DNA of 64,000 bases from Leidyana gryllorum EB-2025a (GCA_048772705.1 JBLWGC010000204.1:62001-126000); one strand, 5' to 3'. Positions 1 through 27,006 are shown, counted from the stretch's first letter. Notes: a model not told the origin generated them from the letters alone. Numbers and translations: made by a program.

Positions 1-326
1 GTTGTGCCAGGCTTCGAGACTGGAGAGACCACAACGGCGGTCTTCCACACTGAGGAAAGACCAGCAGCGGCAGTCTCTGCGGCTGGAGGGACCACAGCGG
101 CTGTCTTCCATATAGAAGAAGTAACAACAGCGGCAGTCTCTGCAACTGGAGGGACCACAGCGTTAGTCTTCCACACTGAGGAGATGCCAGTGACAGCCCT
201 CGGGACTGGAGGGACCACAGCAGCAGGTCTGGCTGGTGGCTTCCAACAGCTCCGATCAGTCTGCTTCGATATGTGTGCAGAACCACCGAGGCGATCGGGG
301 CCGATCAATGGGGGGAAGTCATCCAT
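1..326 (-). CDS. 5' part of a gene running off the window start (MDDFPPLIG...), with a 21-aa tandem repeat; possibly another cluster member
   Basis: ATG at 326; frame open to base 1: MDDFPPLIGPDRLGG...WKTNAVVPPVAETAAVVTSSIWKTAAVVPPAAETAAAGLSSVWKT. Same strand as the helicase array. Not in the ORF track because there is no stop in the window. Confidence 0.6.
   Translation of the reverse strand, partial: MDDFPPLIGPDRLGGSAHISKQTDRSCWKPPARPAAVVPPVPRAVTGISSVWKTNAVVPPVAETAAVVTSSIWKTAAVVPPAAETAAAGLSSVWKTAVVVSPVSKPGT
21..228. repeat. ~63-bp imperfect coding tandem repeat (3-4 units)
   Basis: accaca(a/g)c anchors at 28, 91, 154 and 214 (period 63, 63, 60). Confidence 0.8.
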
Positions 327-510
327 TCTCGGGGTTCAAATCAAACAACGGGATCGTCAACCACCCAAAAACTGTAATAAACACGAGCCGAACCGTACAT
401 AAAATAGCAATCATGTGAACTCAACTTATCGCTCAGATCGTTTATGAGATCGCAATCAGCCATAACGGCTTTGGAATCTCTCGCTGACCACATACTTTCA
501 ACCTTCGCTA

Positions 511-3459
511 TCATCGAGATGGTCTCTTCCATTTGCTTTTCATTGCAGGGTAGACGCGGTCGTCGCCCGCCAAACTCGGGAAGTCCTCTTCTCCACGATT
601 CTCCTCGACCCGAGCGGCCGCCTTTGGTGGTGGAGCCCGAGGAGACTGCGGTTTCTTTGTGGGTGCAAACCGAGCCTTAGGCCTCGCAGCACCGGAGGGT
701 GCTGTGTTCCCTCGAGACACTGTTGTATTGGAGGATTTTCCGGGCGACACGTTGCCGTTAGACCTCCTATCCCTCCATGGTGTAGCCTTGGAGCCCCCCC
801 GCTGCCAAATGGGGCTGCTCGCTTTGACTGTCCCGGAGGGGTTGCTCGCTTTGACTGTCCCGGAGGACCCCACGGGCCATTTCGGTGGTCCTCGTGGTGT
901 CTTCTTGACCCCTCCGTCGGGCTCCAGGGGTGGGGCAGCGGCGCCTCGTACCACCGTCGGTTGCGGAGGATCTCGAACCCCCCCTTCTCCAGCCGGATTA
1001 ATCCTGACCTCAGGGTGAGTCGTGACAGTGTGCTTTCCACCACCATGTTTCCCTCGGTCCGGTCCGCCAGCAGCCTTCCACTGCGCTGTCTTCGACGGAG
1101 TCGACACCTTCCCCAATAGGGATGGGAACTGGTTGGCGTTCTGCATGTCCGGCAAGCTCGAAAGCTCTGGAGGAGCGGTGGGTCGAGTGGGAGAGTCTCG
1201 GGGCGTTCGTCGACCGCCTCTGGAGAATGTTCGACTCCCTGTGGTGGGTTGTAATGCAAAACGGACACAGAGATCGTCATAACGTGATCTCCATTTGTTT
1301 GATTCAAAAGCGGACCCACAATCTGTGATCTTTCCAGACTGTTGTATGTGGGTGTACAGCGAGTCGAATAGAGGATTACATCCGAATGTGTTCCAGTTGC
1401 CGAAGATGGCCAGATGCTTACGAGCTCTCGTCACGGCGACATTTAGTCTGTTGGGATCTTTAACAAATCCAATGCTCTTATTCGGATTACATCGGACGAG
1501 GGTGAGGATGATAACATCTCGTTCCCCGCCTTGGAAGCCATCGACAGTGGACACTAAAATCTTCTTGTCGAGGCCTTCTGTTCGGAGCCCAGCGTCGTCG
1601 GCGATGAGCTCTTCGATTAATCTAACCTGTTTCTTGTAGGGAGCGATAATACCGATGTCGTTCAATGACTCGTTCAACGGTAACAGCTTCTTTCGCAGAT
1701 ACTCCAAGGTCAGAAGAGCTTCGCCCAAATTGCAGTAGCTGTGCTCCTCGAGATATTGAAGCTCGGACTGCTTAGCAGTCAGCAGAGTGGATGAATCGGT
1801 CACAGCTTTCAGTTCCGGACAGTCTTTCTCCACAGTGTTGAACCACTCCAAAACAGGCAGCGTTGGAGACACTCTTATGTCTCTAACAGAATGATGTGCC
1901 ATGACGCGTCCGTGGTAGAACTGTTTCGAGCTCCAATCACTAATGTGCTGATTCGATCGGAATTGGACTGTGAGCATTGTCGAGAGATGACGCGACTCGT
2001 CTCTCATCAATTGACCCATAAGTGTTGTTCCCTCAATGTCAGTATTCTTTACAGTTGGGCCCAGTTGGTGGTGATCGCCAGCCAAAATCAACTTGGCGCC
2101 TTTTTTCACGGCAATCAGAGCATCGATCTCCAGACATTGGGCCGCTTCGTCGATTATAACGTATTCAAATTCAACGTTTTTGAGCTTCTGACTCGAAGCA
2201 GAATTGCAGGTCGTGAAGATAGCCCGAGATCTTCTGAGAACGCTCTCATTGATCTCACGCCGAAGACGTTTCTCCCGCATCGAGACTTCCCCGAATGTGG
2301 TCGCAGTGGGCAACGAGTCCATTATGTCGACATCCTCTTCATCAGAATCCAACTCGATCCCCAAAGCTTGTGCTGCCGCCTTCTCTTTGGCCTGTCGCGC
2401 GGTGGTCAGGGAGAGCAATAGCTCGTAATGTGGATCATCCTTGATGGCCGACGAAAAGAGCGTTGAGTGCACCGCTGGACTCGCTTTATGCGGGGCAGCG
2501 ATGCGGAGCAACCAGGATTTTTCCACCTGTTTGAACTTCAGCATTCGTTCCAGCAAGTTATCACACGCCACATTCGACCCCGCACATACTAATATCTTGC
2601 GGTTTGGAGAGTACAATATGAGCGACAATAAGAGTGTTGCCAGAGTTGTTGTCTTTCCGGTTCCAGGAGGTCCGTGAAGGATCGACACTGGACTCCGAGT
2701 CAATAGAAATTGGACCGCCTCGGTCTGGCCGGGTGCGAGTCCCTCGGGAAGTACAGAGACTGGCAGAGGTATGATGGAAGCGGGACTCGACGACTTGAGG
2801 ATGAAGCTCAACAGGTATGCAGAGACTCCCTCCGGGTCCTCAATACTCTTCAATAGGCGCTGGCGTTGCTTATGCGTAGCGTCGTTGCCTTTGATCCCCA
2901 CCGTCACAGTCGACGAGGTCAGTTGGCCCAGGAGCGACATTGTCAGAAAGGCGGTATCCAGACTGACTTGAACTGTCTTTCTATCAACACGATGCACGAC
3001 CGCTCCGACAATCTCTTTCACGTCTGCCAGTGCTTGACCTCGAGTGTTGAGAGCCTCTTCGTGAAGCACACAGGCATCACCTCTCTTGTACTGTACAAAG
3101 GGGATCGGGCACCCATCCACCGATTGCAGTATAAGGACATGCCGTCCCCTCTCTTCTGACGGTCTATGAGTACGAAGCCGTAGACCCTGAATCGCTTGAC
3201 CCTTCTGGACGAGTCCGTCGGCTGTGATTTTGGTACGGAGGGCATTGTTCTCGTTTGTTTCCTCCCGCAGCTCCGCTTTGATCAGCAACGCCTGCTGATC
3301 TTTCCACTGTTCGAATTCACCTTTCGTCACTCCTCCTTGGCTCTCATCGGTGAGACGAGACTCGCGACTGTGGAGCGTAGCCGTCTCGGTCGTAGAGGGT
3401 TTCAAAGAGAGACCGAAAGGGGTGTCGACAGCCACCGGTGCCAATGTGGGCCTCACCAT
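511..3459 (-). CDS. IGHMBP2/Hcs1-like SF1B (Upf1-like) helicase, copy 1, intact motifs, disordered basic C-tail
   Basis: HGPPGTGKT (I), CAGSNVACDNL (Ia), IIDEAAQ (II), LAGDHHQLGP (III), LTVQFRSN (IV), STVDGFQGGERD (V), RLNVAVTRAR (VI). The N-terminal LLIKAELREE...GLVQKG resembles the IGHMBP2 N-terminus. Confidence 0.92.
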   Translation of the reverse strand: MVRPTLAPVAVDTPFGLSLKPSTTETATLHSRESRLTDESQGGVTKGEFEQWKDQQALLIKAELREETNENNALRTKITADGLVQKGQAIQGLRLRTHRPSEERGRHVLILQSVDGCPIPFVQYKRGDACVLHEEALNTRGQALADVKEIVGAVVHRVDRKTVQVSLDTAFLTMSLLGQLTSSTVTVGIKGNDATHKQRQRLLKSIEDPEGVSAYLLSFILKSSSPASIIPLPVSVLPEGLAPGQTEAVQFLLTRSPVSILHGPPGTGKTTTLATLLLSLILYSPNRKILVCAGSNVACDNLLERMLKFKQVEKSWLLRIAAPHKASPAVHSTLFSSAIKDDPHYELLLSLTTARQAKEKAAAQALGIELDSDEEDVDIMDSLPTATTFGEVSMREKRLRREINESVLRRSRAIFTTCNSASSQKLKNVEFEYVIIDEAAQCLEIDALIAVKKGAKLILAGDHHQLGPTVKNTDIEGTTLMGQLMRDESRHLSTMLTVQFRSNQHISDWSSKQFYHGRVMAHHSVRDIRVSPTLPVLEWFNTVEKDCPELKAVTDSSTLLTAKQSELQYLEEHSYCNLGEALLTLEYLRKKLLPLNESLNDIGIIAPYKKQVRLIEELIADDAGLRTEGLDKKILVSTVDGFQGGERDVIILTLVRCNPNKSIGFVKDPNRLNVAVTRARKHLAIFGNWNTFGCNPLFDSLYTHIQQSGKITDCGSAFESNKWRSRYDDLCVRFALQPTTGSRTFSRGGRRTPRDSPTRPTAPPELSSLPDMQNANQFPSLLGKVSTPSKTAQWKAAGGPDRGKHGGGKHTVTTHPEVRINPAGEGGVRDPPQPTVVRGAAAPPLEPDGGVKKTPRGPPKWPVGSSGTVKASNPSGTVKASSPIWQRGGSKATPWRDRRSNGNVSPGKSSNTTVSRGNTAPSGAARPKARFAPTKKPQSPRAPPPKAAARVEENRGEEDFPSLAGDDRVYPAMKSKWKRPSR

Positions 3460-3566: not shown

Positions 3567-6416
3567 CTACCCTTTGCAAACGGCTGCTTGGACGTCATTT
3601 TCCCGCGGACTGTGAGTTGGTCCATGTCTCACACAATATCCCACCAAAGGTTTGGCGCCGCGAGGCGAGGCGTTACCGAGCTTCGACCCGCTTCGCGAAC
3701 CATCAAATGGTGTTACTGTGGAGACATCGATCACTTTCAGAGAGCTTCGGACCCCGGAGTCAGCAGCATCTGGGTGGAAATTTCGGATTGCATCGAGGAA
3801 CTCTTTATCGTCAACACCAGCAGCCTCAAAGTGTTTCAGATCCCACTTCGCGATTTGGGCTTGATGAGATGCCATCCAGTTTGCATTGGGGAAGGCGTCA
3901 ATGGCTCTCGTCAATTTTCCGTTTCGCCGAATATACTCGTAGAGAGATCTGTAAGTGTGTAACGAATTGGCTGTCGGCCGGTGTCCAATGATCACAATGT
4001 GCTTTCGTGCCAGTGTGACGGCTCTATGGACTCCATTGGGTCTCGTGCAGTATCCGACGCCTTCAGGGGTGATGAAGCTGAGAGGCGTGAGGATTATTAC
4101 ATCTTTCGCTTCCGCTCCCAAATGCTGCACTGTGAAGGATGAGATCTTGGCACGCAACCGGGAGGATTGTAATTCAGTGCTCTCTCTCAAGAGCGCATTG
4201 ATCAATTTAAGTTGCTTCCGAGAAGGAGCGAGAATACCAATATCTGTGATTACCTCACAGAGGGGCACAAGGAATTTGAGCAAATACTCCAAAGTCAAAC
4301 GAGCTTCAATCGGGCATTGGCTCAGATGCTGATAGGGTTGGCGCTTTTCGGGCGACTTGGGAGAGTTGAGAGCAGTATCATGTGGGTTTAGTACACAGTC
4401 CGAAGGTGCTTTGTTTATCCATTGCCAAACTGGGAGTGTCTGCGACAGTCTGATGTTTCGGACGGAAGGGTGGGCGGTGAGCTGTCCACTATAGAAATAT
4501 TCGGAGATCCAATCACTGATGAGCTGATTTGATCGCATTTCTTCTGTTAGCGGTATGAGGAACTCGCATGGATTCTTTTCCGACAGTGGTTGGGGATAGG
4601 TGGATTTCCCCCCGTTAAGCTTCTCGAGAATGGGGCTCAATTGCGGCTTGTCCCCCGCCAACACCACCCTGATGCCCTCCTTTGCCACAGCGCGAACTCT
4701 TTTCCCTTGGCAGAATTCTCCGTCGAGGATGACGTCAGTAAAATGCCGATGTTTCAACACTCGGCTCCCAGCCATTTGAGTCACACAGAAGACAGCTCGG
4801 GCCTCGCGCACAATGTCGTCCTTGACTTCCTCCAACAACGCCTGCGATCGACTCTGCAGCTGAGCAACATTCGATTCGATGCTCGCTATCTTTTGCGCTT
4901 CTCCACATTTAGAAAGCTTCTTTAGTTGCTGCTGTATACGGCGTTGAATGTCATTTCGTTGTACAAATTTGGGATGGAGCTTCCGACGTGAAGACCACAG
5001 TACAGTATCCAGCGGTCCGCCGCTTTTCTCGGCTGTTGAGAAACGCAAGATTTCTGATGTGTCCACTCCACCCAAGTCAAGCACCTTTTTTAGCAAGTCG
5101 TCGACAAGTGGACCGCATTCCGCGCACACTAAAATCTTGCATTCGGGAGACTGAAGGCGGTACCGTATATACTCCGCCAGTACTGTGGTCTTTCCGGTCC
5201 CTGGAGCCCCGTAGAGAATGGATAATGACTCCTGGGAGACTAACAAGGAGAAGGCATCGTACTGATGCCTGGTGAGACTTTTCGGAATGGTAGAATTGGG
5301 TATGTCTCCCCCAGTTGCGGGATATTGACGCGGCGCCATGGAAGTTGTGCCGTCATCATTGGGACTTTCGCGGCTCTCCATGTCTCGTGGTACCACAGGG
5401 CTTTGACTTGAAGAGGTCTGATCGCCACCGCTCGCCTGGGCGATTGCAGCGGGTACCACTGTGGTGGTCAATGCTTGTGCACATCGTGTAGGGAGGGGAC
5501 GCACTTCTGTGGTCTCAATGTCAATTGATACCCCCGAGTCTCGGGTCGTAAAGTGGTCATTGGTGGTGGGCGATAGGTTGATCGTGTCTGTCGTCAGAAA
5601 CTTCATCATTGTTTGTACACATTGTGGGTTAGGGAGGATGAAGTGCGTAGCATCTCTGGTAATTTGCACCCCAACGGCATCGACAGTGATTGTCGTGTTA
5701 GAGACGACTCTCTCGTGGGTCTTCGACCCTCCTCGACGAAGTCTACACAGAGGGACGCCTTTACATTTCACATGAGCCATCGACTGTCCATTAGGCATTT
5801 GGAAGACCACTGTGATTCTGCCTCCCTCGTCATTCACCGGAGAGCCATCAATGACTGAACTCTCCGGCCTCGAGCCGGGAGACGCGACGTTGGAGTGCCA
5901 GGCCGCTTCCACCGCGACGTCTCCTTTCTTCTCAGTGATGTTCGACCACGCTGGGGTGGCATTGCTCTTCTGACACCCCGACAGTGGTGAGAGGGTCGAG
6001 GAGTGTCCGCCGCCGTCTCTCCCCTCGGTAAGGGAGTGAGACGACAGTGCTGTCTCTTCGGGACCCCCGGCGGCGTGGGAGACTTGAGATCTGAGTCTAA
6101 CACTCCCCGAGGGCACCGACGCGACTACTGAGAAGTGCGTATGTCGATCGACGCTGTGCGTGAGTGGTAAAAAGCCATCCAACAGAACGGGGCAATGCCC
6201 TCCAGTCTTGGAAGACACCAGAATTCGTAATGGTGTATTCAGGCTCGACTCGCAGTTGTCATTCTTACGCCTCGACATCCATTCCTTCACGGCTCTGAAG
6301 GCCGTTTGACACATAATGGCTAGGGAACAGAGACAACCGATTTTTCCCAGTTCTGAACTACCATTGATCAGAGAGCTCAACACCGAAGGATTGGCGGCTA
6401 AACTTTGTGATGTCAT
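3567..6416 (-). CDS. IGHMBP2-like helicase paralog, copy 2, catalytically degenerate (pseudo-helicase)
   Basis: Keeps YGAPGTGKT and LAGDKPQLSP, but Ia=CAECGPLVDDL, II=ILDGEFCQ, V=FTVQHLGAEAKD and VI=GVHRAVTLAR. The 949-aa ORF is intact; start may be ATG 6314. Confidence 0.85.
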   Translation of the reverse strand: MTSQSLAANPSVLSSLINGSSELGKIGCLCSLAIMCQTAFRAVKEWMSRRKNDNCESSLNTPLRILVSSKTGGHCPVLLDGFLPLTHSVDRHTHFSVVASVPSGSVRLRSQVSHAAGGPEETALSSHSLTEGRDGGGHSSTLSPLSGCQKSNATPAWSNITEKKGDVAVEAAWHSNVASPGSRPESSVIDGSPVNDEGGRITVVFQMPNGQSMAHVKCKGVPLCRLRRGGSKTHERVVSNTTITVDAVGVQITRDATHFILPNPQCVQTMMKFLTTDTINLSPTTNDHFTTRDSGVSIDIETTEVRPLPTRCAQALTTTVVPAAIAQASGGDQTSSSQSPVVPRDMESRESPNDDGTTSMAPRQYPATGGDIPNSTIPKSLTRHQYDAFSLLVSQESLSILYGAPGTGKTTVLAEYIRYRLQSPECKILVCAECGPLVDDLLKKVLDLGGVDTSEILRFSTAEKSGGPLDTVLWSSRRKLHPKFVQRNDIQRRIQQQLKKLSKCGEAQKIASIESNVAQLQSRSQALLEEVKDDIVREARAVFCVTQMAGSRVLKHRHFTDVILDGEFCQGKRVRAVAKEGIRVVLAGDKPQLSPILEKLNGGKSTYPQPLSEKNPCEFLIPLTEEMRSNQLISDWISEYFYSGQLTAHPSVRNIRLSQTLPVWQWINKAPSDCVLNPHDTALNSPKSPEKRQPYQHLSQCPIEARLTLEYLLKFLVPLCEVITDIGILAPSRKQLKLINALLRESTELQSSRLRAKISSFTVQHLGAEAKDVIILTPLSFITPEGVGYCTRPNGVHRAVTLARKHIVIIGHRPTANSLHTYRSLYEYIRRNGKLTRAIDAFPNANWMASHQAQIAKWDLKHFEAAGVDDKEFLDAIRNFHPDAADSGVRSSLKVIDVSTVTPFDGSRSGSKLGNASPRGAKPLVGYCVRHGPTHSPRENDVQAAVCKG

Positions 6417-6536: not shown

Positions 6537-6664
6537 CAAGACTCCTCGCGATGATAATGATATTCCAATTTGAAATTCAAAGGATTGATTCTCTCACCGT
6601 CTCTGTCAGATTTCAATCTTTCAAATTTCAGATTGGAATATCATTATCATCGCGAGGAGTCTTG
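6537..6664. repeat. 128-bp inverted repeat/hairpin (52-bp arms, 24-nt spacer)
   Basis: 6537-6588 vs reverse complement of 6613-6664: outer 33 bp perfect, 4 mismatches in total. Confidence 0.95.
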
Positions 6665-6674
6665 AGATCGCGTC

Positions 6675-6799
<125 letters not shown>

Positions 6800-6852: not shown

Positions 6853-9186
6853 TCAGGCGGTGTCAGCGCAGCCCAGATCGGGGCCTGCCAACTTGAAGGT
6901 TTCAAGGATTGAATAGTACTGCGCTTCCCAGTCTCGGTCGGGGAAGAGATCAGTGGCAGTGGATATAAGGCCTTTCTTTTGTATATGAGCCTGGATGGAC
7001 TTGAAAAGAGGTGTGGTATCGTAGGTGGCCCAATTTCCGACAATGAGGAGATGCTTTTGAGCTCTCGAGACGGCAAGATTGAGTCTGTTGGGACTTCTGA
7101 CCAAACCGATACCTTTAAAGTAGTTACATCTCACAAGGCTGAGAATGATAATATCGCGTTCTCCACCTTGGAAACCATCCGGCGTTGAGACCAAAATATT
7201 CTTTGAGAGTCCGGACGATTGGAGTTCGTCCGAGGCATCGATCAATCGTTGGATTAGTTCAATTTGTGTTCTGTACGGCGCGACGACTCCTATTTTGATG
7301 TCAGCAATTTTCAGAGGCAACAGAGTCTTGGACAGATATGCCACAATTATAAGAGCTTCGCCCAGGTTACAGAAAGTGCTCGGCTCCAAATGGTGCAGTT
7401 CTTCAGGTCTATGGGGGCGAAAGGTTGCCGAGCATCGCTTTTCCAACAACTCTGGAGAGTCTTCCGGCGTTGTCACGATCCACTGGAGAGTCGGAAGTGT
7501 TGGAGACACTTTGATATTTCGAACAGAGGGATGAGTGGTAACTTTGCCGCCGTAAAACTGCTTCGAGATCCAACTGTAAACGTCATCATTACATCGGAAC
7601 TGCTGTGTAAGCGTTGTTGTTATATTTCGGCCCTCATCCGCCATCAACCGTCCCAGAAGGGTCGTTCCTCCCATAGTCTTATTTTTCACGATGGGCGCCA
7701 GTTGAAGGGGATCACCAGCCAGAATTACCTTCTTGCCGCGTGTCACCGGGATCAACGAGTCAATTTCCAAACATTGGGCCGCCTCATCGATAATAACGTA
7801 ATCAAAGGTGCGGTTAAGGCGAATTGGATCCAAAGCCATATTGCAAGTCGTGAACACCACTCTCGCTTTGTCCAAGACACCCTCAAAGGCTTCCCTCAAT
7901 TCTTCTCGGGCTGTGAAGGGGTCGACGAAAGGCCGATTCTCGTTGGAGTATGGAGCAGTCTCGGTGAGACGCTCGCCAACTGCTTTATTGGCCTCCTGCC
8001 AGCAGTCGGGATGATTCGGATGATCCCGTGAGATCGATCGGAGTGACATGTCCTCCGTCGCGGGGTTTGGTTTTGGAGAGGCCGCAATACGTAGCAGCAC
8101 GGAACTGTCGATTCTATTCAATTTGCGCAGTTGTTGGTGCACATTGTCCACAGCGACATTGGATGCCCCGCATACCAAAATTTTGCATTCGCTGTCTTGC
8201 GAAAGTAAGTAACAGATCAGATGTATCAGAACTCTGGTCTTTCCCGTTCCGGCGGGTGCGTGGAGTACCGCGATGGGACTTCGATCACGCAGAAAACAGA
8301 ATGCCTTGAACTGATCTCTAGAGAGCTCTTTGGGTCGTGTCACGGCGGGCATCCGGAGGACTCCGGGCGACCGTAGCGGGTCCAGAATGAATCTCATAAG
8401 CATCCCAGGACGCGAATGGGTTCTCTCGATATCGTACATTACAATTTCACGTCGATGATGGGTCAGCATGGGATGGCCGATGGCCAAAGTTACAGTATCT
8501 GACGATAATTGACGGATCAATACGTCCGTATTGTCACGTCTCAGAATAGTAACCTGAACCACAAACTTGTTGACTTTGAGAACCACAGCGTCAAGAAGAA
8601 CGGGTGTATTCCCAAGTGTGACACCCGCGGTGGTCGGGTTCTCGCGGTACAGTATGCATAGATCTCCTCTTTTACAATTTACAGAGGGTACCTTCTTTCC
8701 GTTCCACATTTTGAATATTAGAGTATCTCTTCCTCTGTCAATAGACGCTTTGTCGGTAATAAATTGCAGGCCTCTGATAGCTTTGTCCCTATTGGCCAGA
8801 TCAGTCGCCGTGAGCTTGGCAACTCGAGCCTCAAAGGCATCAATACACTGCTGTTTTTCGGCAGCAATGAGCGCATTTTGACACGTGATCCATTTAATGA
8901 ACTTGGCTTCAGGTGATGACTGGTCGATAGTTCGAGGTACAACTGCTTCAAACACTTGCGTCTTGTCTCGACGCCATACCGATCTAGGCGCTGGAAAAAT
9001 TGACTGCTTACTTTCAGCAGTCGTAGCCGGTATCTGAGCATTCGTAGCCGAGCTCTCAAAGTGGTTAGCTTCATTGTCACACTTAGTCAAGTGGTCTTCA
9101 AAGTCTGACACGAGGTCATCAGTAGCAAGTTTCTCTTCGGACCCGTGAAGCCACTGTTTGACGGCATTGTATGACCGTTGAACCAT
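6853..9186 (-). CDS. IGHMBP2/Hcs1-like SF1B helicase, copy 3, essentially intact motifs
   Basis: HAPAGTGKT, CGASNVAVDN, IIDEAAQ, LAGDPLQLAP, LTQQFRCN, STPDGFQGGERD, RLNLAVSRAQ. Confidence 0.92.
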   Translation of the reverse strand: MVQRSYNAVKQWLHGSEEKLATDDLVSDFEDHLTKCDNEANHFESSATNAQIPATTAESKQSIFPAPRSVWRRDKTQVFEAVVPRTIDQSSPEAKFIKWITCQNALIAAEKQQCIDAFEARVAKLTATDLANRDKAIRGLQFITDKASIDRGRDTLIFKMWNGKKVPSVNCKRGDLCILYRENPTTAGVTLGNTPVLLDAVVLKVNKFVVQVTILRRDNTDVLIRQLSSDTVTLAIGHPMLTHHRREIVMYDIERTHSRPGMLMRFILDPLRSPGVLRMPAVTRPKELSRDQFKAFCFLRDRSPIAVLHAPAGTGKTRVLIHLICYLLSQDSECKILVCGASNVAVDNVHQQLRKLNRIDSSVLLRIAASPKPNPATEDMSLRSISRDHPNHPDCWQEANKAVGERLTETAPYSNENRPFVDPFTAREELREAFEGVLDKARVVFTTCNMALDPIRLNRTFDYVIIDEAAQCLEIDSLIPVTRGKKVILAGDPLQLAPIVKNKTMGGTTLLGRLMADEGRNITTTLTQQFRCNDDVYSWISKQFYGGKVTTHPSVRNIKVSPTLPTLQWIVTTPEDSPELLEKRCSATFRPHRPEELHHLEPSTFCNLGEALIIVAYLSKTLLPLKIADIKIGVVAPYRTQIELIQRLIDASDELQSSGLSKNILVSTPDGFQGGERDIIILSLVRCNYFKGIGLVRSPNRLNLAVSRAQKHLLIVGNWATYDTTPLFKSIQAHIQKKGLISTATDLFPDRDWEAQYYSILETFKLAGPDLGCADTA

Positions 9187-9621: not shown

Positions 9622-12495
9622 TCACTGGGTCTCGTCGGCCCATTCCGTCTCGTCGGTCGACTCTGTGTAGTCGTCTTCGGAGTCGTCGTCAGAGCCGTTC
9701 TCGCCGACAGGTCGCAGACTAAAGGCTTTGAGTAACGGAAGATAGTCCGTCTTCCATTTGCCGTCTGGGAAGAGATCGTTGGCGTCCAGGATCTCGCCGT
9801 TCTTCTTCACATGGGAATAGAGAGACTTGAAGTAGTAGTAAGAGCGGAAAGTTTGGCGATTGGCCACGATCACGAGATGTTTTCGAGCTCTGGTGATCGC
9901 AACATTCAGTCTATTTGGCTCTTTCACGAATCCGATACCCTGATAGGTATTAGATCGGACGAGACTGAGAAGAATTACATCGCGTTCTCCTCCCTGGAAA
10001 CCGTCAACGGTCGATACCAAAATCCTTCCAAACAGTTTTGAAGATCTTAGATCGTAGGATCTACGAATGAGATCCTCAATTAATAAAACTTGTTTCTTAT
10101 AGGGAGCTATTATCCCAATGTCATTGAAAGCTTCTTCGAGAGGCAACAGGGTCTCGTGCAAATACTGCACAATTAAGAGAGCTTCCCCCAAATTACAAAA
10201 GGAGTGCTCTTCCAAATGATGTAGCTCGGCTGGTTTGGTAGTAAGGAAGGTGGAGGAGTCTGTGACTGCCTTCAGCTCGGGACAGTCTTTGGCTGGAGTG
10301 GTGACCCATCGAAGAATTGGGAGTGTCTCGGACACTCTGATATCGCAAACCGATGGGTCAGCTGTGACTTGTCCATCGTAGAACTCCTCCGAACTCCAAT
10401 TACTGATTAGTTGATTAGACCGAAACTGCACCGTTAGCATTGTCGACAAGTTTCTTTCTGTATGTTCCATCAAACGGCCCATAAGGGTCGTTCCTCCAAT
10501 GGTATTGTTCTTTACAGTTGGCCCAAGCTGGTGATGATCTCCAGCCAGAATCAATTTTTTTCCGCGTTTCACCGCAATGAGAGCATCGATCTCCAAACAT
10601 TGGGCCGCCTCATCAATGATAACATAATCAAATTGAACCTCGTCGAGGTCACGGCTGGCCGCCGTGTTGCACGTTGTGAAAACGGCTCTCGCTTTTTCAA
10701 AGATGTCGTCCAAAATACCTTTGCGGACGCGGCTTTCCGTCTCCGAGAGGTCAGCAAACATTCGAGCTCCTTCGTCGTTTGAATCATAAGACTCGTCGTC
10801 GCTGACTTCTTCTACCACCTCCCCCAACTCTTTCTTCACCTCCTTCTCGTACTCGCGTCGCGCTCGGATGGCTTTCACCAAACTCTCGTAATTGGGGTGC
10901 TCCCTTACGACCGAAGTAAGCACCACAGGATACACCGGTTGAGCGAATCTATGAGGGGCGGCGATCCGTACAAACCAGGATCGATCGGCCCCTTCCATCT
11001 TGAGCATCCGCTCCAACAAATTATCCACTGCCACATTGCTTCCTGAACACACCAGAGTCTTGGAGTCAGGAAACTCAGTCATGAGATGAAAGATCAGAGA
11101 GGCGAGAGTGGTGGTCTTCCCGGTCCCAGGAGGGCCGTGGAGGATGGAGACGGGTCTTCGGGTGAGCAGAAAGTCAAATGCCTCCTGCTGCCCGGTACTG
11201 AGCCCCGAAGGCGTCTGGTTGGACGACGACGATGGCGGTCTGTCGACTATTCGCGCAGGCCCCGCTGAGGCCTTCAGGACGAATTTCATCACTGGTCGGA
11301 ATCGCAGTTCGATATCCGTGAGATCCTCTAACATTGCTTTACGCCGCTCGTGCGTAATCAAATTGATGCCGATGCCCAGAGTGATCTTGGACGATTCTAA
11401 TTTTCGAATCAAGTCGCCTTTGCAAAGCGATACCGGAATAGTCACATACACCACGTATTTGGTCACCCGCAGTACCACAGCCTTAACAATCGGCTCTATG
11501 TCTGCGAGCGTAGCGCGGCTATTCCAGTCGTCCCCGTCTTCCGAATGCAGAGTACAGGGATCCCCCCGCTTATATCGCACAAATGGTATTTGTCCACTAC
11601 CGGTCAATTTTAGTATCAGCATTTCCCGCCCCCTCTCCCCGGAAGGTCTGTGGGATCGATACTCCAAATTCTTGATGGCCCCACCCTTTTTGGCCAACCC
11701 CGCCGAGGTGATCTTGCTGAGTAGCGCCGCAGTTTCATCGACTTCTTGCCGCTTTTCCGCAATAATCAACTCCTTTTGAAAGACCTTCCAGTCTTCAAAT
11801 CCGGCTCGCGGTGACAACATTGCCACTGCCCGCTTCTCCGGTATGCGCGAGACACTGGGCTCCCACTGGGGCTCACGTCGGGTCCATACGGCGGGTGGGC
11901 GGCGTTGAGGCACAGGTAGCGCTGGCCACTCCGCATCATCGAGATGTGTCGAAGTTGTCGTCGACACTCCTCCCATGCATACGAAAATGTCATCATTGAA
12001 GCTGCGGAGGAAGTTTATGCTCCGACTCCCTTCGGCAGCCGGCCAAACGCATTCGTCCTCGTCCGAGGCAACTTTCGATTCGGTATGACACTCCTCCTCC
12101 TCCTCCTCTGTATCCCCAACCACTTGATGGTCATTGGCGTCGCCGTCGTCGCCGTCGTCGTTGTCGCCGTCGCCGTTGTCGCCGTCGTCACCCCCGTCGT
12201 CTGGGAGTGGTGAGGTTGTCTCCGTATCCTCAACGACTTGGTGCTCGCGAAAGACGTCGTGCGACTCGGGTGGAGACGTCTCATTTTTGGGGGGGTGGCC
12301 GGTGTGGGGGTCTGGGGCTGCTGAGTCAGCGTCCACGATCAGCGGTGGAGCAGTATCAGTGTTGTCGACGTCCTGCCCGCCCCCTTCAGAGGGTGAGGAG
12401 ACGTCAGGCAAAGGGGAAGGTCGATGAGCGGTGAGTGTCCTACTCCTTTCGATCCCCAGGAGATGGTGAAAGGTTTTCGAAAAGAGTCGGAACAT
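9622..12495 (-). CDS. IGHMBP2/Hcs1-like SF1B helicase, copy 4, intact motifs, acidic disordered N-extension
   Basis: HGPPGTGKT, CSGSNVAVDNL, IIDEAAQ, LAGDHHQLGP, LTVQFRSN, STVDGFQGGERD, RLNVAITRAR. First ATG is at 12495 (the ORF track starts at TTG 12501). Confidence 0.92.
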   Translation of the reverse strand: MFRLFSKTFHHLLGIERSRTLTAHRPSPLPDVSSPSEGGGQDVDNTDTAPPLIVDADSAAPDPHTGHPPKNETSPPESHDVFREHQVVEDTETTSPLPDDGGDDGDNGDGDNDDGDDGDANDHQVVGDTEEEEEECHTESKVASDEDECVWPAAEGSRSINFLRSFNDDIFVCMGGVSTTTSTHLDDAEWPALPVPQRRPPAVWTRREPQWEPSVSRIPEKRAVAMLSPRAGFEDWKVFQKELIIAEKRQEVDETAALLSKITSAGLAKKGGAIKNLEYRSHRPSGERGREMLILKLTGSGQIPFVRYKRGDPCTLHSEDGDDWNSRATLADIEPIVKAVVLRVTKYVVYVTIPVSLCKGDLIRKLESSKITLGIGINLITHERRKAMLEDLTDIELRFRPVMKFVLKASAGPARIVDRPPSSSSNQTPSGLSTGQQEAFDFLLTRRPVSILHGPPGTGKTTTLASLIFHLMTEFPDSKTLVCSGSNVAVDNLLERMLKMEGADRSWFVRIAAPHRFAQPVYPVVLTSVVREHPNYESLVKAIRARREYEKEVKKELGEVVEEVSDDESYDSNDEGARMFADLSETESRVRKGILDDIFEKARAVFTTCNTAASRDLDEVQFDYVIIDEAAQCLEIDALIAVKRGKKLILAGDHHQLGPTVKNNTIGGTTLMGRLMEHTERNLSTMLTVQFRSNQLISNWSSEEFYDGQVTADPSVCDIRVSETLPILRWVTTPAKDCPELKAVTDSSTFLTTKPAELHHLEEHSFCNLGEALLIVQYLHETLLPLEEAFNDIGIIAPYKKQVLLIEDLIRRSYDLRSSKLFGRILVSTVDGFQGGERDVILLSLVRSNTYQGIGFVKEPNRLNVAITRARKHLVIVANRQTFRSYYYFKSLYSHVKKNGEILDANDLFPDGKWKTDYLPLLKAFSLRPVGENGSDDDSEDDYTESTDETEWADETQ

Positions 12496-13953
12496 TAGCA
12501 ATGATGAGTTCTTTGAGGGCTATTTTTGGTCTTTGTGTTAACGTTTGTTTGGTCGCACAGGTTTGTAAGATCCTCAAGTGTTCTCGTGGCTCACTCATGT
12601 TGCAGAGCGGCCCCAGCTATGTATGAGAGGGCGAGAGGATAAAAAAGAATAGAATAGCATGGCTGTGCCAATGTGTTGCGTCCCTTTCCACGAGTATCTG
12701 AGCCCCAAAGTGGGGGTTAGGTCTGACGAGCGTGAGGGATACACAGAACAGACTTTTGATCATTCAGCTTCTCTGACGGGTGATCAAGGGAGCGATCTTA
12801 GATCAATATGCATCCATCGATCTGCGTAGATTGATCGAGTTGTAAGGTTGTCAGTGGCAGGTGGGCAGTTTGGCGTCGATCTATCGGGCGATCGGGTCGC
12901 CAACTGTAGACTTCTCACCATGTCCACCATCATGTATGTAGACGTCGGCCGAAACCATCATCATTTGAGGTGTGAACCTTCCTCCCGTACGCCACCGAAG
13001 GCGGAATTGTAGTCAGCAGAAACAAAAGTCTGGGCTAAATATATGCGGCCGAGGTTTTAGCCAAAGGAAAAAACTCTGACAAAGGCGTATTTACTTGTGA
13101 ATGCCACATCGTATGCTTCTGCGTCGAGGAGCAGAGCGCGATTGGGTGACGTTGAAACTTAAAAAGATAGCAGTAGGCCTCCGAGTGTCTTACACTGTAC
13201 TCTGTGGGCGAACGGGGGTGATTAATTGGGTGAGTGTACAGATTCATCATTGAGGAGCCTCCTTCTAAAGTTGGGTGAAACAACAATCTCCCGCTCAGAA
13301 TCGTCTGTCCAAATGGCCTCTGCGTTTTGTGGATGTGGATGAAGTGATATGCGAAGAAATCTTGATGATACGGTGAAATGACCCAGGATATACACATACA
13401 GAGGGGGAAAGATTACGATGTGCCTCGTTGTGTAAGATGGAACAAAATGAGCGGTCGTAGAACGTAGAGGACGGACGAGCTCCACTTGCAACAACAAGAG
13501 AAAAGAAGAGGATAGTACAAGTTAGGAAGGCAAGAGTCAATCACTTCGTCGCTCCGTTCGATCATTCGACCGACCGGAGGCTGGCTCATCCGAACAACAT
13601 GGGCAATCAATCAATCAAATGAGACTCTGACCAAGAACTCAGGTCTCTGTCCGATATCGAGATTCCTGCACTCTGTCTTAATCTTAATCTCAATCTCTCT
13701 CTCGTGCGTTCTCGCCCCCTCTCCCTTCCTCGTAATGGACATTACGAGGAAGAAGAGGAAGGAGATTAGAATAAGCATTCCCGAAAAAGAAAGAGGGGTC
13801 CAACTTTGAACCGGTGCCATAAATCCATCTGTCCACGGCTGAGAGAAGTACATAGAGTAACGATGAGATAGAAACACCAATATATTACAACACGACACGC
13901 CCTCAATACCCTCTCATACACAAAAGGATACTGAGAACATTCATAAAGAGGGA

Positions 13954-22500: not shown

Positions 22501-25500
22501 CGGTCTGGAAGTGGAGGCACCACTGTTGAGCGCCGACTTGGGCTCCGGTAAGATCGGTTTGGTGGGCTGTTTAGCTCGACGCGTTGCTGACCACGGATTC
22601 AGAACGACGAGTCGATGTCGCAAGATACTCTCCGTAGTGGCCGCATGATCCTTGAGCCTACCGCAGGTACCCATGAATGCATTGACTGGTTTGGCCAAAG
22701 GAATTCGGGTGGCCTGCCGAGCCTTTGAAGAGGGCGGAATATGCGGTGCCAGTCGCTTGGACTTTTTCCCAGGCTGTTTGGCCTTGCGAGCGGCCATCTC
22801 GGGGCTGCCCAGAGACTTGACAACATGGACGGTTGGACCTCCGGGAGCCAGAGGAACTGCCATGACAATCTCCTCGGGCACTCCGGGCAGATCCGCTATA
22901 GTGCGCAGCTTTCGAACTCGATCAGCAGACGTATCGACCCTCTTCTGAGTCCAATCGACCTCTTTCTCATACACATCGAGTCTCCGTTCGAGAGTCATAT
23001 TGTCAGCGAATGTCACGGGTTTGCGTTGTTCGAGTTTCATCATGACGCGCGCATAAGGAAAGATGTCCTCGAAGCGGCCTGGAAATATGTATTTGCGGGT
23101 GTTGATGTTCTTCGGCAGATTCATCCGAAGTAACGTCCCCCGGCACGGTCTGTAGGTTTTGTAGAAACAGTTGGTGGTCTCCGTGGGTATCTGGTGGCCA
23201 CCGACAAAGTCAACATCCAGCGGCTTTCCTGTGATGAGGCGCTCCACTGCCTCCCAATTGCCGGTGATGAAGCGTACGTGGCCGCTCATGCGAGTCAATT
23301 GAATGGAATAATCTCCAGAAAAGTCATCTTTCCAGACAGAATTCACACGTGTACCAGTGAGGACGCCATAGTGAGTCGCAAAGACCTCAGCGGGAGGGCT
23401 GCAGAATAGTCGCAGTCGGCTGGTGTTCCTGAGATACAGTGTTGCTTTATCGCCCTTGGCATTGACTTCTAGATGGCCTTCGGCCTCTCGCAGCCCACCT
23501 ACAACCAGTCACCACGACAAGTCGTGGAAGAATAATGAATGCTCACCATACACGGGGAAGGAGTCCTCGCCGTCCTGGATTTGACCAACCACTGGCGGGG
23601 GTTTCCTGCGGGGTGTCGGTCCGAGGGGAAACTGGTCAGACCTGTGAGCTGTACAACATGTGGAGTGACTTTTGCGGACATCGATTGGCACCTACGCGGA
23701 TACTCGTATTCGGCCCACGGCATATAGACTTTGGCGCCCGGCCCGACCTCCAAGTCAGAACCGGCACTCAGGACTTTGATCGGATGGTCTCCACTGAGTA
23801 GCTGAAGAGCGGGTTGCTCCACTCGCAAGAACCATCGCTTGCCATCACTTCGCAGCAGCTCCACCTCGTGTTGGTACTTGGGATCGCCTCTGAAGGACTT
23901 TAGGCGGAACTTGGTGGGGACTACCCATGTGTCCTTTCCAATGAAATATCGCGCTCCGGTAAAGTCTTTCATAGTGAAGGGTACGCACTCATCCTTCGAG
24001 CGGCACACGAGGATCTTGCAGGGATCACAGTCTTTGGTGTCGATCGCGGGCTTGTCATCCAATTCTCGTTCCCAGAAAGAGGCGATATATCTACGTCTCT
24101 CCACAAATTGTTGGCGGTACGTCTGTTCCCACTCCGCTTTGGTCAGTGAGGCAATCATTGAGCGCATTCCACCGAGCACCTCAAAGTGGATGTAATAGTG
24201 GTCAGGTCTCATCGGGACGTCATGTTTGGAGAGGGACACCCATTTATTGACAACGAGTGCCGGTCCGTCCATCCATCTCGGTATCTCCCCAACCAAAGTC
24301 TCCGGTACCGGTGGCAAGGTGAGTTGAGTTGACTCCCGAGGTTGGTCAAAACCACCTTTCACATAACCCATATACTCGGCTGTGAAGGTTCTGCCCAAGT
24401 CCATACGCATCACCTCGTAGTTATCCATTGTCTTCCAGCGAGGAGTCGAGCGGGCGGGTTGGAATAAGGACCATAGTGCCCATAGCGGCTGTGCGAGCTG
24501 AAGTTTAGAAGACGGACCCTGGATACGGACATCGTCTGGGCACGGGAGTTCTTTGATGGGCGGATAGTACATGACTCCCTTGACGAGTCGTTCAATTCTC
24601 TCGGGATGTGGCCGTCGCTCGAATCTCACCCCTTTGACTTCTCGGAAGTCGGTGTGCACATCGTTCATAAACTTGTACTTTGCGACCTCGGTTGCCCGGG
24701 GAGGATCCTCGGCATTGAGTATAAGATATCTGCTTTCCAAGAACGAGTGGAAGCACGAGTAGAAGGGGCTCAGTGAGGTGATGCGAGGTATGTTCCCGAA
24801 AACATTGAAGATCTGTGTAGCTCCCAACATACAGAGGAGGAAGTCGGCTGGAGACATTAAGTGTCCATCACAACTCGTCGTGGCCCCAGCCACCAACGAG
24901 ACCAATACAACTTCAACAGTCTGGAATCTCAGTCTCTCAGGCGGCCACACATAGAGTGTTTCCTCGTCCAGGAAACGGTCTAATCCATACTCCTTCTGCA
25001 ACAGATAGTTAAAATAATCACGTTGCTTCTCGTGATCAGATATGATCGCAATCTTCCAGCCGTGAGCCAGAGTAACTTCCCAGTAGTCTCGCAGACTCAT
25101 CATCACTTGAAGCGCCTCAGCCCGATTCACGTGATGGTTGGCATCCCAGCTGATGGGTTCGTCGCCACTCCACACAGAGTGGTCGAAGTCCCACGTGGCA
25201 CTGTCAATCCACGCGAGGCTTGGGACGGATGCATCGACCCATGTGGGGGGCCGCTCGAGTCCGTCATCATGAAAGTGGTCGGGTCCCAGGAGATGGTGAA
25301 GAGCGGCAACAGTTAAGCCTGGCACATGGGTAGGGAGGGTGGACCGATAGATCATGCGATGTTTCTTGTCCAATTCTTGTCTCATCATGAAACAGACCAT
25401 TGAAGGATAGGGAGTATACATTCGTTTGAACGGGTGAAGAGTGTGTTCCAAGCGTTCACGCGGCAAACCGTCATCAATTAGGATGCAGCTCGAACTGCGT

Positions 25501-27006
25501 GAGCTCGGGATAATTGTGTCCAATTCGCTCGTGGAAGCAGCGTCTACCACAATAACATAGTCAAATATACGTCCCTGGCGCTCCATTTCGGTCGGTACAT
25601 TCTCAACGACGCCCAAACACGTGTCGAAACAGACCTCCGCCTCCCAGATCAAACGCATTCTTTCAGTGCGCAGGCCTTCTGGCACAAAGACGTCATCGTC
25701 GTACCGGAAGTCCTTATAGATGTTGCGTTCCGGCATCTCTAACAATCTATTGCGATCTTGCGGAGCCAACCCATGGCAGACACGAGCTGGGTGACCATAG
25801 GGAATGTCTTCCACACACAAGTATTGAAGGTATAGGGGTACACACTTAGGTGAAGAGAGAATGAGACACCTTCTGCCTCTGAATTGATCTGTTGACAGGG
25901 AGAAGAATATTGAACGGTCGCGCCGCGTCTCACCAATTGTGTGCCATAGTATCTTTCTACTTGTGGCTACCACCAGAATGCGAGGACTGCGCTCGTAGAG
26001 CTTCTGAATGGTCGAGAAGATCGTTCCGATGTGATGGTGGCCATCTGTAGCCCTGATGACACTGTACGGCTGCGTTGCGGCGGCCCCGAAGACGGCCTTC
26101 CTCATCGCATCGGAGAGACTCCGATCCGTCACCAGCAATCCGGAGTCCAGGAGGGCCAGATTGATGTGGGCCGGCGGCGGGCCTTCGGCCACAAAGTCTA
26201 CAGATGGGCTGCAGTAAAGAGAGAGAGAAATGAGATGGATATTTCGGAGAGACTCACTTGGCCAAACGACTTCTGACCCATCGGAAAGTCTCGACGAGGC
26301 GGATGTTGTCGATCGATCTGCGTTCGGATTGAGTGATGGTGAAGGTGGAGCTTTTGTGCAGATCGAGAGCAATAACATCAACTGCGTGAACCACCACTTG
26401 GATGGCTTTCCGGCCAGAGATGTTGAGGAGGTATCCTACGGCACAGACGGTGTCCAGTGACAAATCATAGTTGGCTACAGAGTCGACGTGGAGGTCTACT
26501 CGGTGTATGCGGTTCAAGCCAGGGCCACTGACATTGAGGTGTCGGCGTTCGGATTCCGGCACAATAAAGGTAAGTATACTTGTATGTTTCCCGGAGTACA
26601 GATTGTCGCAGAGTCTAAGGCCACGAAGTCGCCACGTTATGCATCGATCGAATAAGTCCAGATTGTGCGGCTGGTATCGTGCGGCTGCGTGTTCTGCCAC
26701 ATCTTGTACTATACTGGAGAAGTGAGGCCGGATCCATTTCTCTATTGCTGGAGCAATAGGCCTCTCAATGAGGTTGGGGGGCTCTTGTTCTTGCCCGTTC
26801 CCGAACAATAAGAGAGCAAAGAGCTCGTCAAGATCCCATCTTTGAGATTCATAGAGCAAGTGAGGATGTAGAATGTCGCGATTTTCGAATAGCCGCGCCA
26901 TTCTGGGTCCCGTTACTCTCCGCGATACTTTGGAAGGATAGTCCCGGACATTGATATGATAAGCAGGCGCCGATTCTGGCACGGATAGATATCGTTTCCC
27001 AACCAT
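16513..27006 (-). CDS. Giant ~3,419-aa protein: N-terminal degenerate Upf1-like helicase fold, unknown globular region, long disordered region and C-terminal helical domain (6 exons)
   Basis: GT-AG introns 26209-26257, 23649-23695, 23499-23546, 18674-18716 and 17910-17956 (43-49 nt) join the ORF-track segments in frame; spliced length 10,260 nt. Helicase remnants: RILVVATS, EAEVCFDTC, FDYVIVVDAAS, NRAEAL, IAIISDHEKQR, VEVVLVSLV. Confidence 0.78.

Follow-up and report, generated by a model that had tools for sequence, protein, structure and literature searches.

Tandem genes for IGHMBP2/SMUBP-2-type helicases, with pseudo-enzymes: a probable lineage-specific expansion in a gregarine-like apicomplexan

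Six tandem, intronless genes for SF1B helicases of the IGHMBP2/SMUBP-2 type (H1-H6) are located on the minus strand of contig C204 in Leidyana gryllorum EB-2025a. The locus is probably an old, lineage-specific tandem expansion of such helicases in a gregarine-like apicomplexan, and what is new here is this lineage-specific helicase expansion together with its pseudo-enzymes. IGHMBP2 is normally a low-copy helicase with one or two genes. A genome-wide count of the copies, which had been proposed as a check in a preliminary description of this DNA, detected the six array-type copies on C204 and zero elsewhere in the genome. The window, i.e., the whole stretch of 64,000 nucleotides that was analysed, holds H3 to H6 and the 5' end of H2, and H1 and most of H2 lie beyond its edge (C204:56580-61984). 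The four adjacent SF1B helicase genes of the preliminary description therefore stand for the window, but not for the total, which is six. Its alveolate host was borne out by an IMCp alveolin gene (28291-28995) and by a housekeeping protein whose best named match is from a Gregarina species (44% identity). The features of the locus are listed in Table 1; no tRNA or Rfam genes were found in 1-30000.

Table 1. Features of the helicase locus, in coordinates of the window.
Feature	Position	Strand	Remarks
H2, 5' end	1..326	(-)	ATG at 326; open frame runs through the window edge; Pfam AAA_11/AAA_12
H3, 982 aa, intact	511..3459	(-)	AAA_11 5e-49, AAA_12 2e-46, 1B domain
H4, 949 aa, degenerate paralog, ORF intact	3567..6416	(-)	AAA_11 1e-20, AAA_12 6e-15
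Hairpin, 52-nt arms	6537-6664		Upstream of H4, intergenic 6537..6797; sequence unique in genome
(TG)60 tract, (CA)n on the coding strand	6678-6797		Upstream of H4
H5, 777 aa, nearly intact motifs	6853..9186	(-)	AAA_11 4e-39, AAA_12 3e-37
H6, ~957 aa, intact	9622..12501	(-)	First ATG 12495; AAA_11 1e-50, AAA_12 6e-46
Low-complexity protein ORF, 736 aa	13954..16164	(-)	No known domain
Giant gene, predicted exons 3-5, or separate downstream gene, ~2,300 aa	16513..23498	(-)	Open frames
Candidate intron, 47 nt	17956-17910	(-)	GTAAGT
Candidate intron, 43 nt	18716-18674	(-)	GTAAGA
Giant gene, predicted exon 2, ~886 aa	23547..26208	(-)	Dead Upf1-like helicase domain, then ~385 aa without known relatives
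Giant gene, predicted intron 1, 49 nt	26257-26209	(-)	Donor GTGAGT at 26257, CAG end at 26209
Giant gene, predicted exon 1, 249 aa	26258..27006	(-)	ATG 27006; without detectable domain

The RecA1/RecA2 core, represented by the Pfam domains AAA_11 and AAA_12, was detected in all six copies, with scores of 56-173 bits (cut-off, 27). Pairwise identity among the copies is only 24-56%, so an assembly artefact as the source of the array is ruled out. Based on alignment A1, from which all motif states were taken, motifs I, Ia, II, III, IV, V, and VI are intact in H1, H2, H3, and H6, and the deviations in H5 are minor (P-loop APAGTGKT; SRAQ in motif VI). H4 retains the P-loop GAPGTGKT and motif III (GD..QL.P), and the other motifs are altered: motif Ia reads CAECGPLVDD, a glycine is inserted between D and E of motif II, motif IV (EMRSN) has lost the glutamine and kept the arginine, DGFQG of motif V is gone, and TLAR is found in motif VI in place of TRAR. 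The H4 ORF continues without interruption through 949 codons despite ~32% identity to its nearest paralog, which argues for selection on translation and thus for constraint on H4. The preliminary description had distinguished three motif-intact copies and one degenerate copy, and this was correct for H3, H6, and H4 and too generous for H5; H4 is the pseudo-enzyme that it had placed within the array.

The subfamily assignment is supported by domain, structure and tree evidence. The SMUBP-2/HCS1 1B barrel (PF21138), N-terminal of the core, scored above its cut-off in H2 (38 bits, genome search), H3 (34 bits, genome search; 29 bits in the search of the window ORFs), and H6 (28 bits, genome search) only, and the N-terminal regions of H1, H4, and H5 align with the same region in A1. 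Against solved structures, the top match of H6 was human SMUBP-2 (4b3f), with 202 bits across the whole core, followed by UPF1 (154), DNA2 (126), SEN1 (125), Aquarius (85), and ZNFX1 (71). In the maximum-likelihood (ML) tree, all six copies clustered with IGHMBP2 sequences, apart from the UPF1 and SEN1-like genes of the genome, and formed one clade with two copies from a relative (support 100/99). The tree holds no MOV10, ZNFX1, or DNA2 references, and those families were judged from the solved-structure scores, among which MOV10 has no reference. By both lines of evidence the copies are not split among different ancient SF1 subfamilies, an outcome that the preliminary description had considered. 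The nearest match beyond the copies of the array and the relative was 32% identical among 5.8 billion proteins, and no array-type helicases were found in JGI metagenome contigs, so that the lineage-specific expansion claimed earlier is upheld.

UPF1, Aquarius, SEN1-like, and canonical IGHMBP2 genes are each encoded separately elsewhere in the genome. The array clade was placed as sister to the canonical multi-exon IGHMBP2 (95/96); this placement depends on one 386-aa exon with a long branch (1.53) and could reflect long-branch attraction. The copies branch in the order H1, H2, (relative a, b), (H3, (H6, (H4, H5))), parallel to the order of the genes on the chromosome, which points to stepwise tandem duplication. 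H4, sister to the adjacent H5 (96/86), has the longest branch (2.81 against 0.31-1.06 in its sisters).

In comparison with human IGHMBP2/SMUBP-2 and yeast Hcs1, the array copies share the AAA_11/AAA_12 core throughout and the 1B barrel in H2, H3, and H6, and they fall inside the IGHMBP2 clade. They differ in number, with six tandem intronless copies plus a canonical gene in place of one or two genes, in a ~20-aa insertion between motifs IV and V of the array clade, in long copy-specific disordered tails, and, for H4, in the alteration of motifs Ia, II, IV, V, and VI. No copy has a Pfam match to R3H or the AN1 zinc finger at E 0.01, and low-complexity tails are found instead; the C-terminal R3H and AN1 domains are the architecture of animal IGHMBP2 and are not universal in the subfamily. 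The superfamily fold and motifs are also common to MOV10/Armitage/SDE3 and ZNFX1, helicases of a kind that the Argonautes encoded in this genome could employ, but H6 is far closer to IGHMBP2 than to ZNFX1, and neither MOV10-type nor NFX1 zinc-finger domains were found in the Pfam search of the window helicases.

The tails carry short motifs of several kinds. The N-terminal tail of H2 begins with MDDFPPL and has about six 21-aa Trp-containing repeats, with 63-nt DNA repeats at 2-224 within the 5' end of the gene. The C-terminal tail of H3 (250 aa) is basic and Pro/Gly-rich and ends in EEDFPSL, and the N-terminal extension of H6 is acidic and Asp/Gly/Glu-rich. Trp motifs are present in the disordered tails of H1-H3, H5, and H6, and acidic motifs of the FPxL/WPAL type in H2, H3, and H6, the strict form [DE]DFP[PS]L being confined to H2 and H3. 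The DNA pattern for EDFP[PS]L is rare across the genome (6 matches versus 1 in the control).

The largest neighbor of the array is a putative giant gene made up of five abutting or overlapping open frames on the minus strand, from 27012 down to 16516. Judging from the sequence, the frames could be spliced together through four short introns typical of the genome, to encode a protein of ~3,400 aa. Canonical frame-restoring introns of 43-49 nt, as in the UPF1 gene of this genome, are present at three of these junctions. The junction near 23500 is ambiguous, because the intron with the best signal keeps the frame and meets a stop 9 codons on, which splits the giant gene. The product of exons 3-5 is mostly Ser/Ala/Pro/Thr/Lys-rich low complexity with the internal repeats D3 and D7, and its last ~250 aa look structured.

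The helicase fold of exon 2 was revealed by profile comparison. Exon 2 aligned with the helicase profile by hhalign over 292 columns stretching from motif II through RecA2 (probability 95.6, E 1.3e-8, score 76; best of 40 shuffled controls, 29.6), with significant homology at 24705-25652. All ten of the best listed neighbors in the protein-language-model search (Atlas) were AAA_11/AAA_12 proteins (score 0.95-0.96), the Pfam matches to AAA_11/AAA_12 were sub-threshold, and the single-sequence AlphaFold model was uninformative (pLDDT 34). In the hhalign columns, DE of motif II has become DA and motifs III, V, and VI can no longer be recognised; the RecA1 half, N-terminal of motif II, aligned non-significantly, although in register with the P-loop, where it reads TDGHHHIGT. 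The fully degenerate helicase fold that the preliminary description had seen in a giant gene is confirmed by the hhalign and Atlas results. The top single pairwise match of the domain was H5, but the array profile (70.5) and the canonical IGHMBP2 profile (71.9) scored equally well, so that descent from the array is not established.

H4 and exon 2 resemble inactive helicase modules with regulatory or scaffolding roles, such as the C-terminal cassette of Brr2 and eIF4AIII, the ATPase-locked RNA clamp of the exon junction complex, in keeping the helicase fold with lost or disabled catalytic residues. Brr2 (Ski2-like) and eIF4AIII (DEAD-box) belong to other superfamilies, whereas the dead units here are separate paralogous genes, and one of them is fused to ~2,500 aa of low complexity.

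Between H6 and the giant gene lies the 736-aa ORF, which is rich in R (11%), G (11%), S (10%), H (7%), and Q (6%), with 22% R+G. It has five isolated RGG and three di-RG motifs, a Gly run, and a Q/H-rich C-terminus. RGG-box and RG-rich proteins are defined by clustered di-/tri-RGG or tri-RG motifs, and the ORF contains zero tri-RGG, di-RGG, or tri-RG. Of the RGG/prion-like protein proposed earlier, the R/G/S/H/Q-rich low complexity was retained and the strict RGG box was not. As for synteny, the sole available contig of the relative (6.7 kb) contains two tandem helicase copies, and no counterpart of the R/G-rich gene or the giant gene was found on it.

The probable tandem expansion can be extended to a history and to roles for the products. 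An intronless copy of the intron-containing IGHMBP2 of the genome, possibly a retrogene, would have arisen, and H1 to H6 would have followed from it by successive duplications along the chromosome. As judged from the family, H1, H2, H3, H6, and probably H5, in spite of its changes in motifs I and VI, are most likely 5'-to-3' translocases that use ATP to move on RNA (or DNA) and remodel ribonucleoproteins. The copies are distinguished mainly by their tails (acidic, basic, Trp-repeat, and [DE]DFP[PS]L), which probably direct each of them to different partners. H4, having lost the motifs for hydrolysis and coupling, can probably still bind nucleotide and RNA but not unwind, and it may serve as a clamp, a decoy, or a regulator. 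The far more diverged dead helicase of the giant gene, together with its long low-complexity part, suggests an RNA-binding scaffold. What the data establish is the family, the motif states, the monophyly, and the number of the copies; enzymatic activity, RNA substrates, the roles of the dead copies, and any link of the helicases to their R/G-rich neighbor are inferred.

Alternatively, active and dead helicases could, together with the disordered R/G-rich protein, form one co-regulated module with a role in RNA surveillance, in RNP granules, or in a defence against viruses or transposons that is linked to small RNAs. The dead copies would then act as decoys or regulators, and the condensate scaffold would be supplied by the low-complexity proteins. 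This is rather unlikely in our assessment, and the reading of the locus as a "system" is speculative. Argonaute/Piwi proteins are encoded in the genome, enzymes and pseudo-enzymes are adjacent, and Trp and acidic motifs recur in the helicase tails, all of which fit a common function. However, tandem duplication is sufficient alone to explain the adjacency of the helicases, and neither the R/G-rich protein nor the giant protein has any of the helicase tail motifs. Counterparts of the two were found neither near the helicases of the relative nor in any database searched, a non-coding gap of 1.45 kb separates H6 from the R/G-rich gene, and this ORF, besides its want of di-/tri-RGG, shows no enrichment of Trp beside Gly. 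Upstream of H4, H5, and the R/G-rich gene there is a (CA)n tract with a hairpin after it (four of the six CA/TG runs in the 64 kb), an arrangement that would fit a role in RNA silencing and favor co-regulation. The shared orientation does not add to this, since most long ORFs throughout the window, and in the 20 kb preceding it, are likewise on the minus strand; the cluster genes all share this strand, as described earlier, but co-orientation is a property of the region and not specific to the cluster. The independent extra duplication in the relative and the strongly unequal branches fit the birth-and-death evolution of defence families, but the paralogs, at 24-56% identity, are old and not in rapid turnover, and the IGHMBP2 subfamily is, to our knowledge, outside the known silencing helicase families. 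More doubtful still is a gregarine-specific RNP module in which active helicases would be loaded onto target RNAs or remodel them, dead paralogs would act as clamps, and low-complexity proteins would build a granule, feeding an Argonaute pathway against active transposons or RNA viruses under co-regulation by the shared (CA)n-hairpin architecture.

It is also conceivable, but distinctly improbable, that H4 and the helicase-like part of the giant gene are functionless, decaying relics of duplication, that the R/G-rich ORF and its giant neighbor either have nothing to do with the array or are in part modelled wrongly (as one gene in place of two or more, or as coding where the low complexity is non-coding), and that only four or five helicases matter. 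The branch of H4, 3-9 times longer than those of its sisters, would agree with decay, as would exon 2, for which phmmer found no match among 1.84 billion representatives; low-complexity ORFs can remain open through composition, and the best-signal intron at the second junction would divide the giant gene. Yet intact ORFs of 949 (H4) and ~886 codons (exon 2) are very unlikely at such divergence without selection, and H4 has selectively retained its P-loop and the conserved residues of motif III. The canonical short introns at three of the four junctions, and the frame preceding the first ATG of exon 3, which resembles ordinary protein, likewise speak against mis-modelling.

Apicomplexan genomes are reduced, and their known expansions are mostly of surface or secreted proteins; therefore, the sevenfold expansion of a low-copy RNA/DNA helicase is unusual here. 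The locus offers a natural series for the passage of an Upf1-like helicase into a pseudo-enzyme, including one pseudo-helicase whose ORF is intact and a giant disordered protein to which a dead helicase is fused. For the poorly studied gregarines, in which Argonautes are still present, the locus points to RNA biology that is specific to the lineage. Should the genes cooperate, they would make up an RNA-surveillance module of a new kind; otherwise, the locus is still a clean case of stepwise tandem duplication, the order of which can be read both in the tree and on the chromosome.

The four adjacent SF1B helicase genes that the preliminary description had placed on the minus strand of the window (C204:62001-126000 of the genome G000, which comprises 15.5 Mb in 237 contigs) were confirmed by Pfam, and the array was extended to six: a genome-wide scan, with which Pfam agrees, revealed two further same-strand copies, H1 and H2, directly beyond the window edge, which cuts the H2 ORF (its ATG is at window position 326). 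Six copies of this type on C204 was also the result of the genome-wide count, as a search with the array profile recovered neither an extra copy nor a remnant elsewhere. Each of H1-H6 is a single uninterrupted ORF; the genome's canonical IGHMBP2 gene and its UPF1 gene contain short introns.

Coordinates of the features discussed (window positions unless a contig is named)
Feature	Position	Strand	Evidence or content
Helicase H3	511-3459	-	Pfam AAA_11 and AAA_12 far over threshold
Helicase H4	3567-6416	-	Pfam AAA_11 and AAA_12 far over threshold
H4 upstream	6537-6797		(TG)60 and hairpin with 52-nt arms
Helicase H5	6853-9186	-	Pfam AAA_11 and AAA_12 far over threshold
H5 upstream	9225-9537		two short TG runs and 15-nt-arm palindrome
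Helicase H6	9622-12501	-	Pfam AAA_11 and AAA_12 far over threshold
R/G-rich ORF	13954-16164	-	composition; no Pfam match, even at E 10
R/G-rich gene upstream	16320-16421		(GT)9 and 12-nt-arm hairpin
Large gene, junction 4 intron	17956-17910	-	GTAAGT ... CAG, 47 nt; frame restored
Large gene, junction 3 intron	18716-18674	-	GTAAGA ... CAG, 43 nt; frame restored
Large gene, junction 2	near 23500	-	several candidate introns; ambiguous
Large gene, junction 1 intron	26257-26209	-	GTGAGT ... polypyrimidine ... CAG, 49 nt; frame restored
Alveolin (IMCp, inner-membrane-complex) gene	28291-28995	-	
Canonical IGHMBP2, single multi-exon gene	C230:907155-909473		
UPF1 gene	elsewhere in genome		UPF1 zinc-binding and 1B domains
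Aquarius gene	elsewhere in genome		
Three SEN1-like loci	elsewhere in genome		

Among solved structures, human SMUBP-2 matched H6 along the entire core, 1B region included, with 202 bits, as against 154 for UPF1, 126 for DNA2, 125 for SEN1, 85 for Aquarius and 71 for ZNFX1. A maximum likelihood tree (32 rows, 660 columns, LG+C20+F+G4) was rooted on the genome's own UPF1 and SEN1-like rows; MOV10, ZNFX1, DNA2 and Aquarius were left out, and the genome's multi-exon genes were entered as single exons. In this tree, H1-H6 and two copies from a relative form a single clade (100/99), sister to the canonical IGHMBP2 exon (95/96), a relation to be read with caution as the exon is long-branched. The array may have originated as a retrogene. 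Both sit among eukaryotic and bacterial IGHMBP2-type sequences, with the UPF1 and SEN1-like rows outside that set. The six copies belong to one IGHMBP2-type clade and do not fall in different ancient SF1 subfamilies.

Branching within the clade runs H1, H2, (relative a, b), (H3, (H6, (H4, H5))), which is the physical order on the chromosome too, a hallmark of duplication step by step in tandem. The relative is represented by a single 6.7-kb Logan contig (ERR10900114_5740) with two tandem copies on one strand, which pair with each other in the tree; at least three lineages are therefore older than the split, and duplication continued in both genomes. Outside the two genomes, the top match among 5.8 billion proteins was 32% identical. 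No further array-clade loci were found in metagenome contigs by a single-protein scan, and an alignment scan of such contigs returned distant relatives only (23-34% full-length identity). The contig with the RTC gene of the relative comes from another sample, has other neighbours and carries no synteny information. No relevant publication on an expansion of IGHMBP2 or other helicases in gregarines or Apicomplexa came up in a literature search. The proposal of a lineage-specific expansion that includes pseudo-enzymes is supported by the clade, by the low identity of the top outside match, and by the motif losses in H4 and the dead domain of the large gene described below.

In the helicase alignment, H1, H2, H3 and H6 possess the full motif set (GPPGTGKT, DEAAQ/DEAGQ, GDHxQLGP, QFRSN, TVDGFQGGE(R/K)D and TRAR), and H5 shows mild deviations (APAGTGKT; SRAQ in motif VI). 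In H4, GAPGTGKT and, in motif III, GD..QL.P are retained, but motif Ia is without its SN..A signature, motif II has an extra Gly between Asp and Glu, motif IV is EMRSN (Gln gone, Arg kept), motif V is without DGFQG, and motif VI is missing its first Arg. The window had been said to hold three intact helicases and one degenerate; this stands for H3, H6 and the degenerate H4, but H5 is better called mildly deviating. The terminal branch of H4 measures 2.81 substitutions per site, compared with 0.31-1.06 in its closest sisters, and its 949-codon ORF is still intact. Because an intact ORF at such divergence is unexpected without selection, we infer that "pseudo-enzyme" fits H4 better than "pseudogene". 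H4 is predicted to bind nucleotide and RNA but to show neither hydrolysis nor unwinding. With 24-56% protein identity among the paralogs, synonymous sites are saturated for dN/dS.

Neither the R3H nor the AN1 domain was detected in the array copies by Pfam. Their tails are copy-specific and disordered: H6 has an acidic tail, H3 a basic one rich in Pro/Gly, and H2 one with Trp repeats. The N-terminal tail of H2 (window 1-326 and C204:59459-61984) consists of about six 21-aa repeats with the core S-(S/V)-W-K-T, encoded by 63-nt DNA repeats. W-basic motifs resembling these repeats are scattered through the tails of H1, H3, H5 and H6. A [DE]DFP[PS]L motif, present at both termini of H2 and at the C-terminus of H3, is a possible short linear motif for a common partner. 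The motif is rare, with six genome-wide matches to the EDFP[PS]L DNA pattern against one in the control. One more copy of the [DE]DFP[PS]L type was seen within the Aquarius helicase gene (C216:66806).

The large gene (27006-16513) comprises five long open frames that abut or overlap, with frames alternating, and the candidate introns at junctions 1, 3 and 4 resemble the 47-58-nt introns of the genome's UPF1 gene. At junction 2, the strongest signals (GTGAGC ... TTGTAG, 48 nt) leave the frame unchanged, with a stop nine codons further on. With such an intron there would be two genes, one of about 1,145 aa with the dead helicase and another downstream of it, and the alternative, a 53-nt or 62-nt intron, would yield a single protein of some 3,400 aa. 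Joining is mildly favoured, since the next frame, over the 73 codons that precede its first ATG, resembles ordinary protein. Searches were run exon by exon. Apart from the exon-2 domain, the gene consists largely of Ser/Ala/Pro/Thr/Lys-rich sequence with internal repeats, and exon 1 did not match the helicase profile.

Exon 2 (886 aa) stayed below significance in Pfam (AAA_11, E 0.03; AAA_12, E 0.12), matched no solved structure, and had no homolog either by word-index search or by exhaustive phmmer against 1.84 billion representatives. Profile-profile comparison with the helicase alignment, by contrast with its 40 shuffles (top score 29.6), gave a score of 76 (probability 95.6%, E 1.3e-8) over 292 columns that begin just ahead of motif II and run to the point where RecA2 ends. 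A protein-language-model search with residues 1-520 returned AAA_11/AAA_12 helicase clusters only (scores 0.95-0.96, 185-198 shared features); residues 521-886 had no match in the Atlas search. Every aligned motif is non-catalytic, in accordance with the fully degenerate helicase fold earlier ascribed to this giant gene, and ahead of motif II the exon is in register with the P-loop region, where the alignment is not significant. From its sequence, the domain is judged to be Upf1-like and dead. It fits the profile of the array and that of canonical IGHMBP2 equally well, so that either could be its source; the top single pairwise match is the array copy H5. An AlphaFold model from the single sequence was unusable (pLDDT 34).

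Between H6 and the 736-aa R/G-rich ORF lie 1.45 kb in which no convincing ORF or RNA gene was found. The composition of the R/G-rich ORF (R 11%, G 11%, S 10%, H 7%, Q 6%) includes just 11% hydrophobic residues beyond position 150. It contains five isolated RGG, three di-RG and a Gly run, and its C-terminal part is Q/H-rich (top 60-aa window: Q+N 30%, Q+N+H 48%). The product is plausibly an intrinsically disordered protein, and the former label "prion-like RGG protein" is loose, as di- and tri-RGG boxes are absent. A role of its Trp motifs as Argonaute hooks is not supported: there are 3 GW/WG among 11 Trp, about chance at 11% Gly.

Upstream of H4, H5 and the R/G-rich gene, the coding (minus) strand shows a recurrent order of elements, in which a (CA)n tract comes first and a hairpin or palindrome stands between it and the ATG; these sites hold four of the six CA/TG runs (at least 5 units) of the 64-kb window. 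The 128-nt hairpin upstream of H4 is unique in the genome, which ruled it out as a repeated mobile element.

The GC content is about 52-58%. An RNA 3'-phosphate cyclase-like housekeeping protein of the window has its top named match in Gregarina sp. (44% identity), then in Vitrella (39%); on these matches and the IMCp gene, the organism is judged to be an alveolate with gregarine affinity that has no close kin among sequenced species. The IMCp ORF is followed, after one stop, by a same-frame 333-aa ORF without a Pfam match (27280-28995, minus strand); candidate explanations for the pair are two separate genes, read-through, and a problem in the sequencing or the model. At 55059-56189 (minus strand) lies an exon for the glycine-cleavage P-protein (PF02347, 1e-70), an enzyme that many apicomplexans are not known to possess. 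A strong strand bias, with the majority of long ORFs on the minus strand, extends over 75 kb or more of C204 (window 27000-58000 and C204:42001-62000) and points to long runs of co-directional genes in this genome.

That these genes form an RNA-surveillance, granule or antiviral system is a hypothesis that we consider rather unlikely. All cluster genes do lie on the minus strand, as had been pointed out, but so do most long ORFs of the window and the preceding 20 kb, and co-orientation is therefore uninformative. The adjacency of the helicases is likewise accounted for by the way in which the copies arose. Further against a system, no tail motif is common to the helicases and the R/G-rich or large genes, and the relative's short contig has no detectable counterpart of either gene. 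Weakly in favour are the (CA)n and hairpin arrangement, together with a short (CA)5 between the two helicases of the relative, the unequal rates and ongoing duplication in the helicase family, and the occurrence of Argonaute/Piwi genes in the genome. Three genes with a Piwi domain, clear in two of them and weak in one, were located (C121:208175-209125, C121:41751-42719 and C43:450907-452273), and their presence makes it probable that Argonaute-based RNA silencing operates in this gregarine-like organism.
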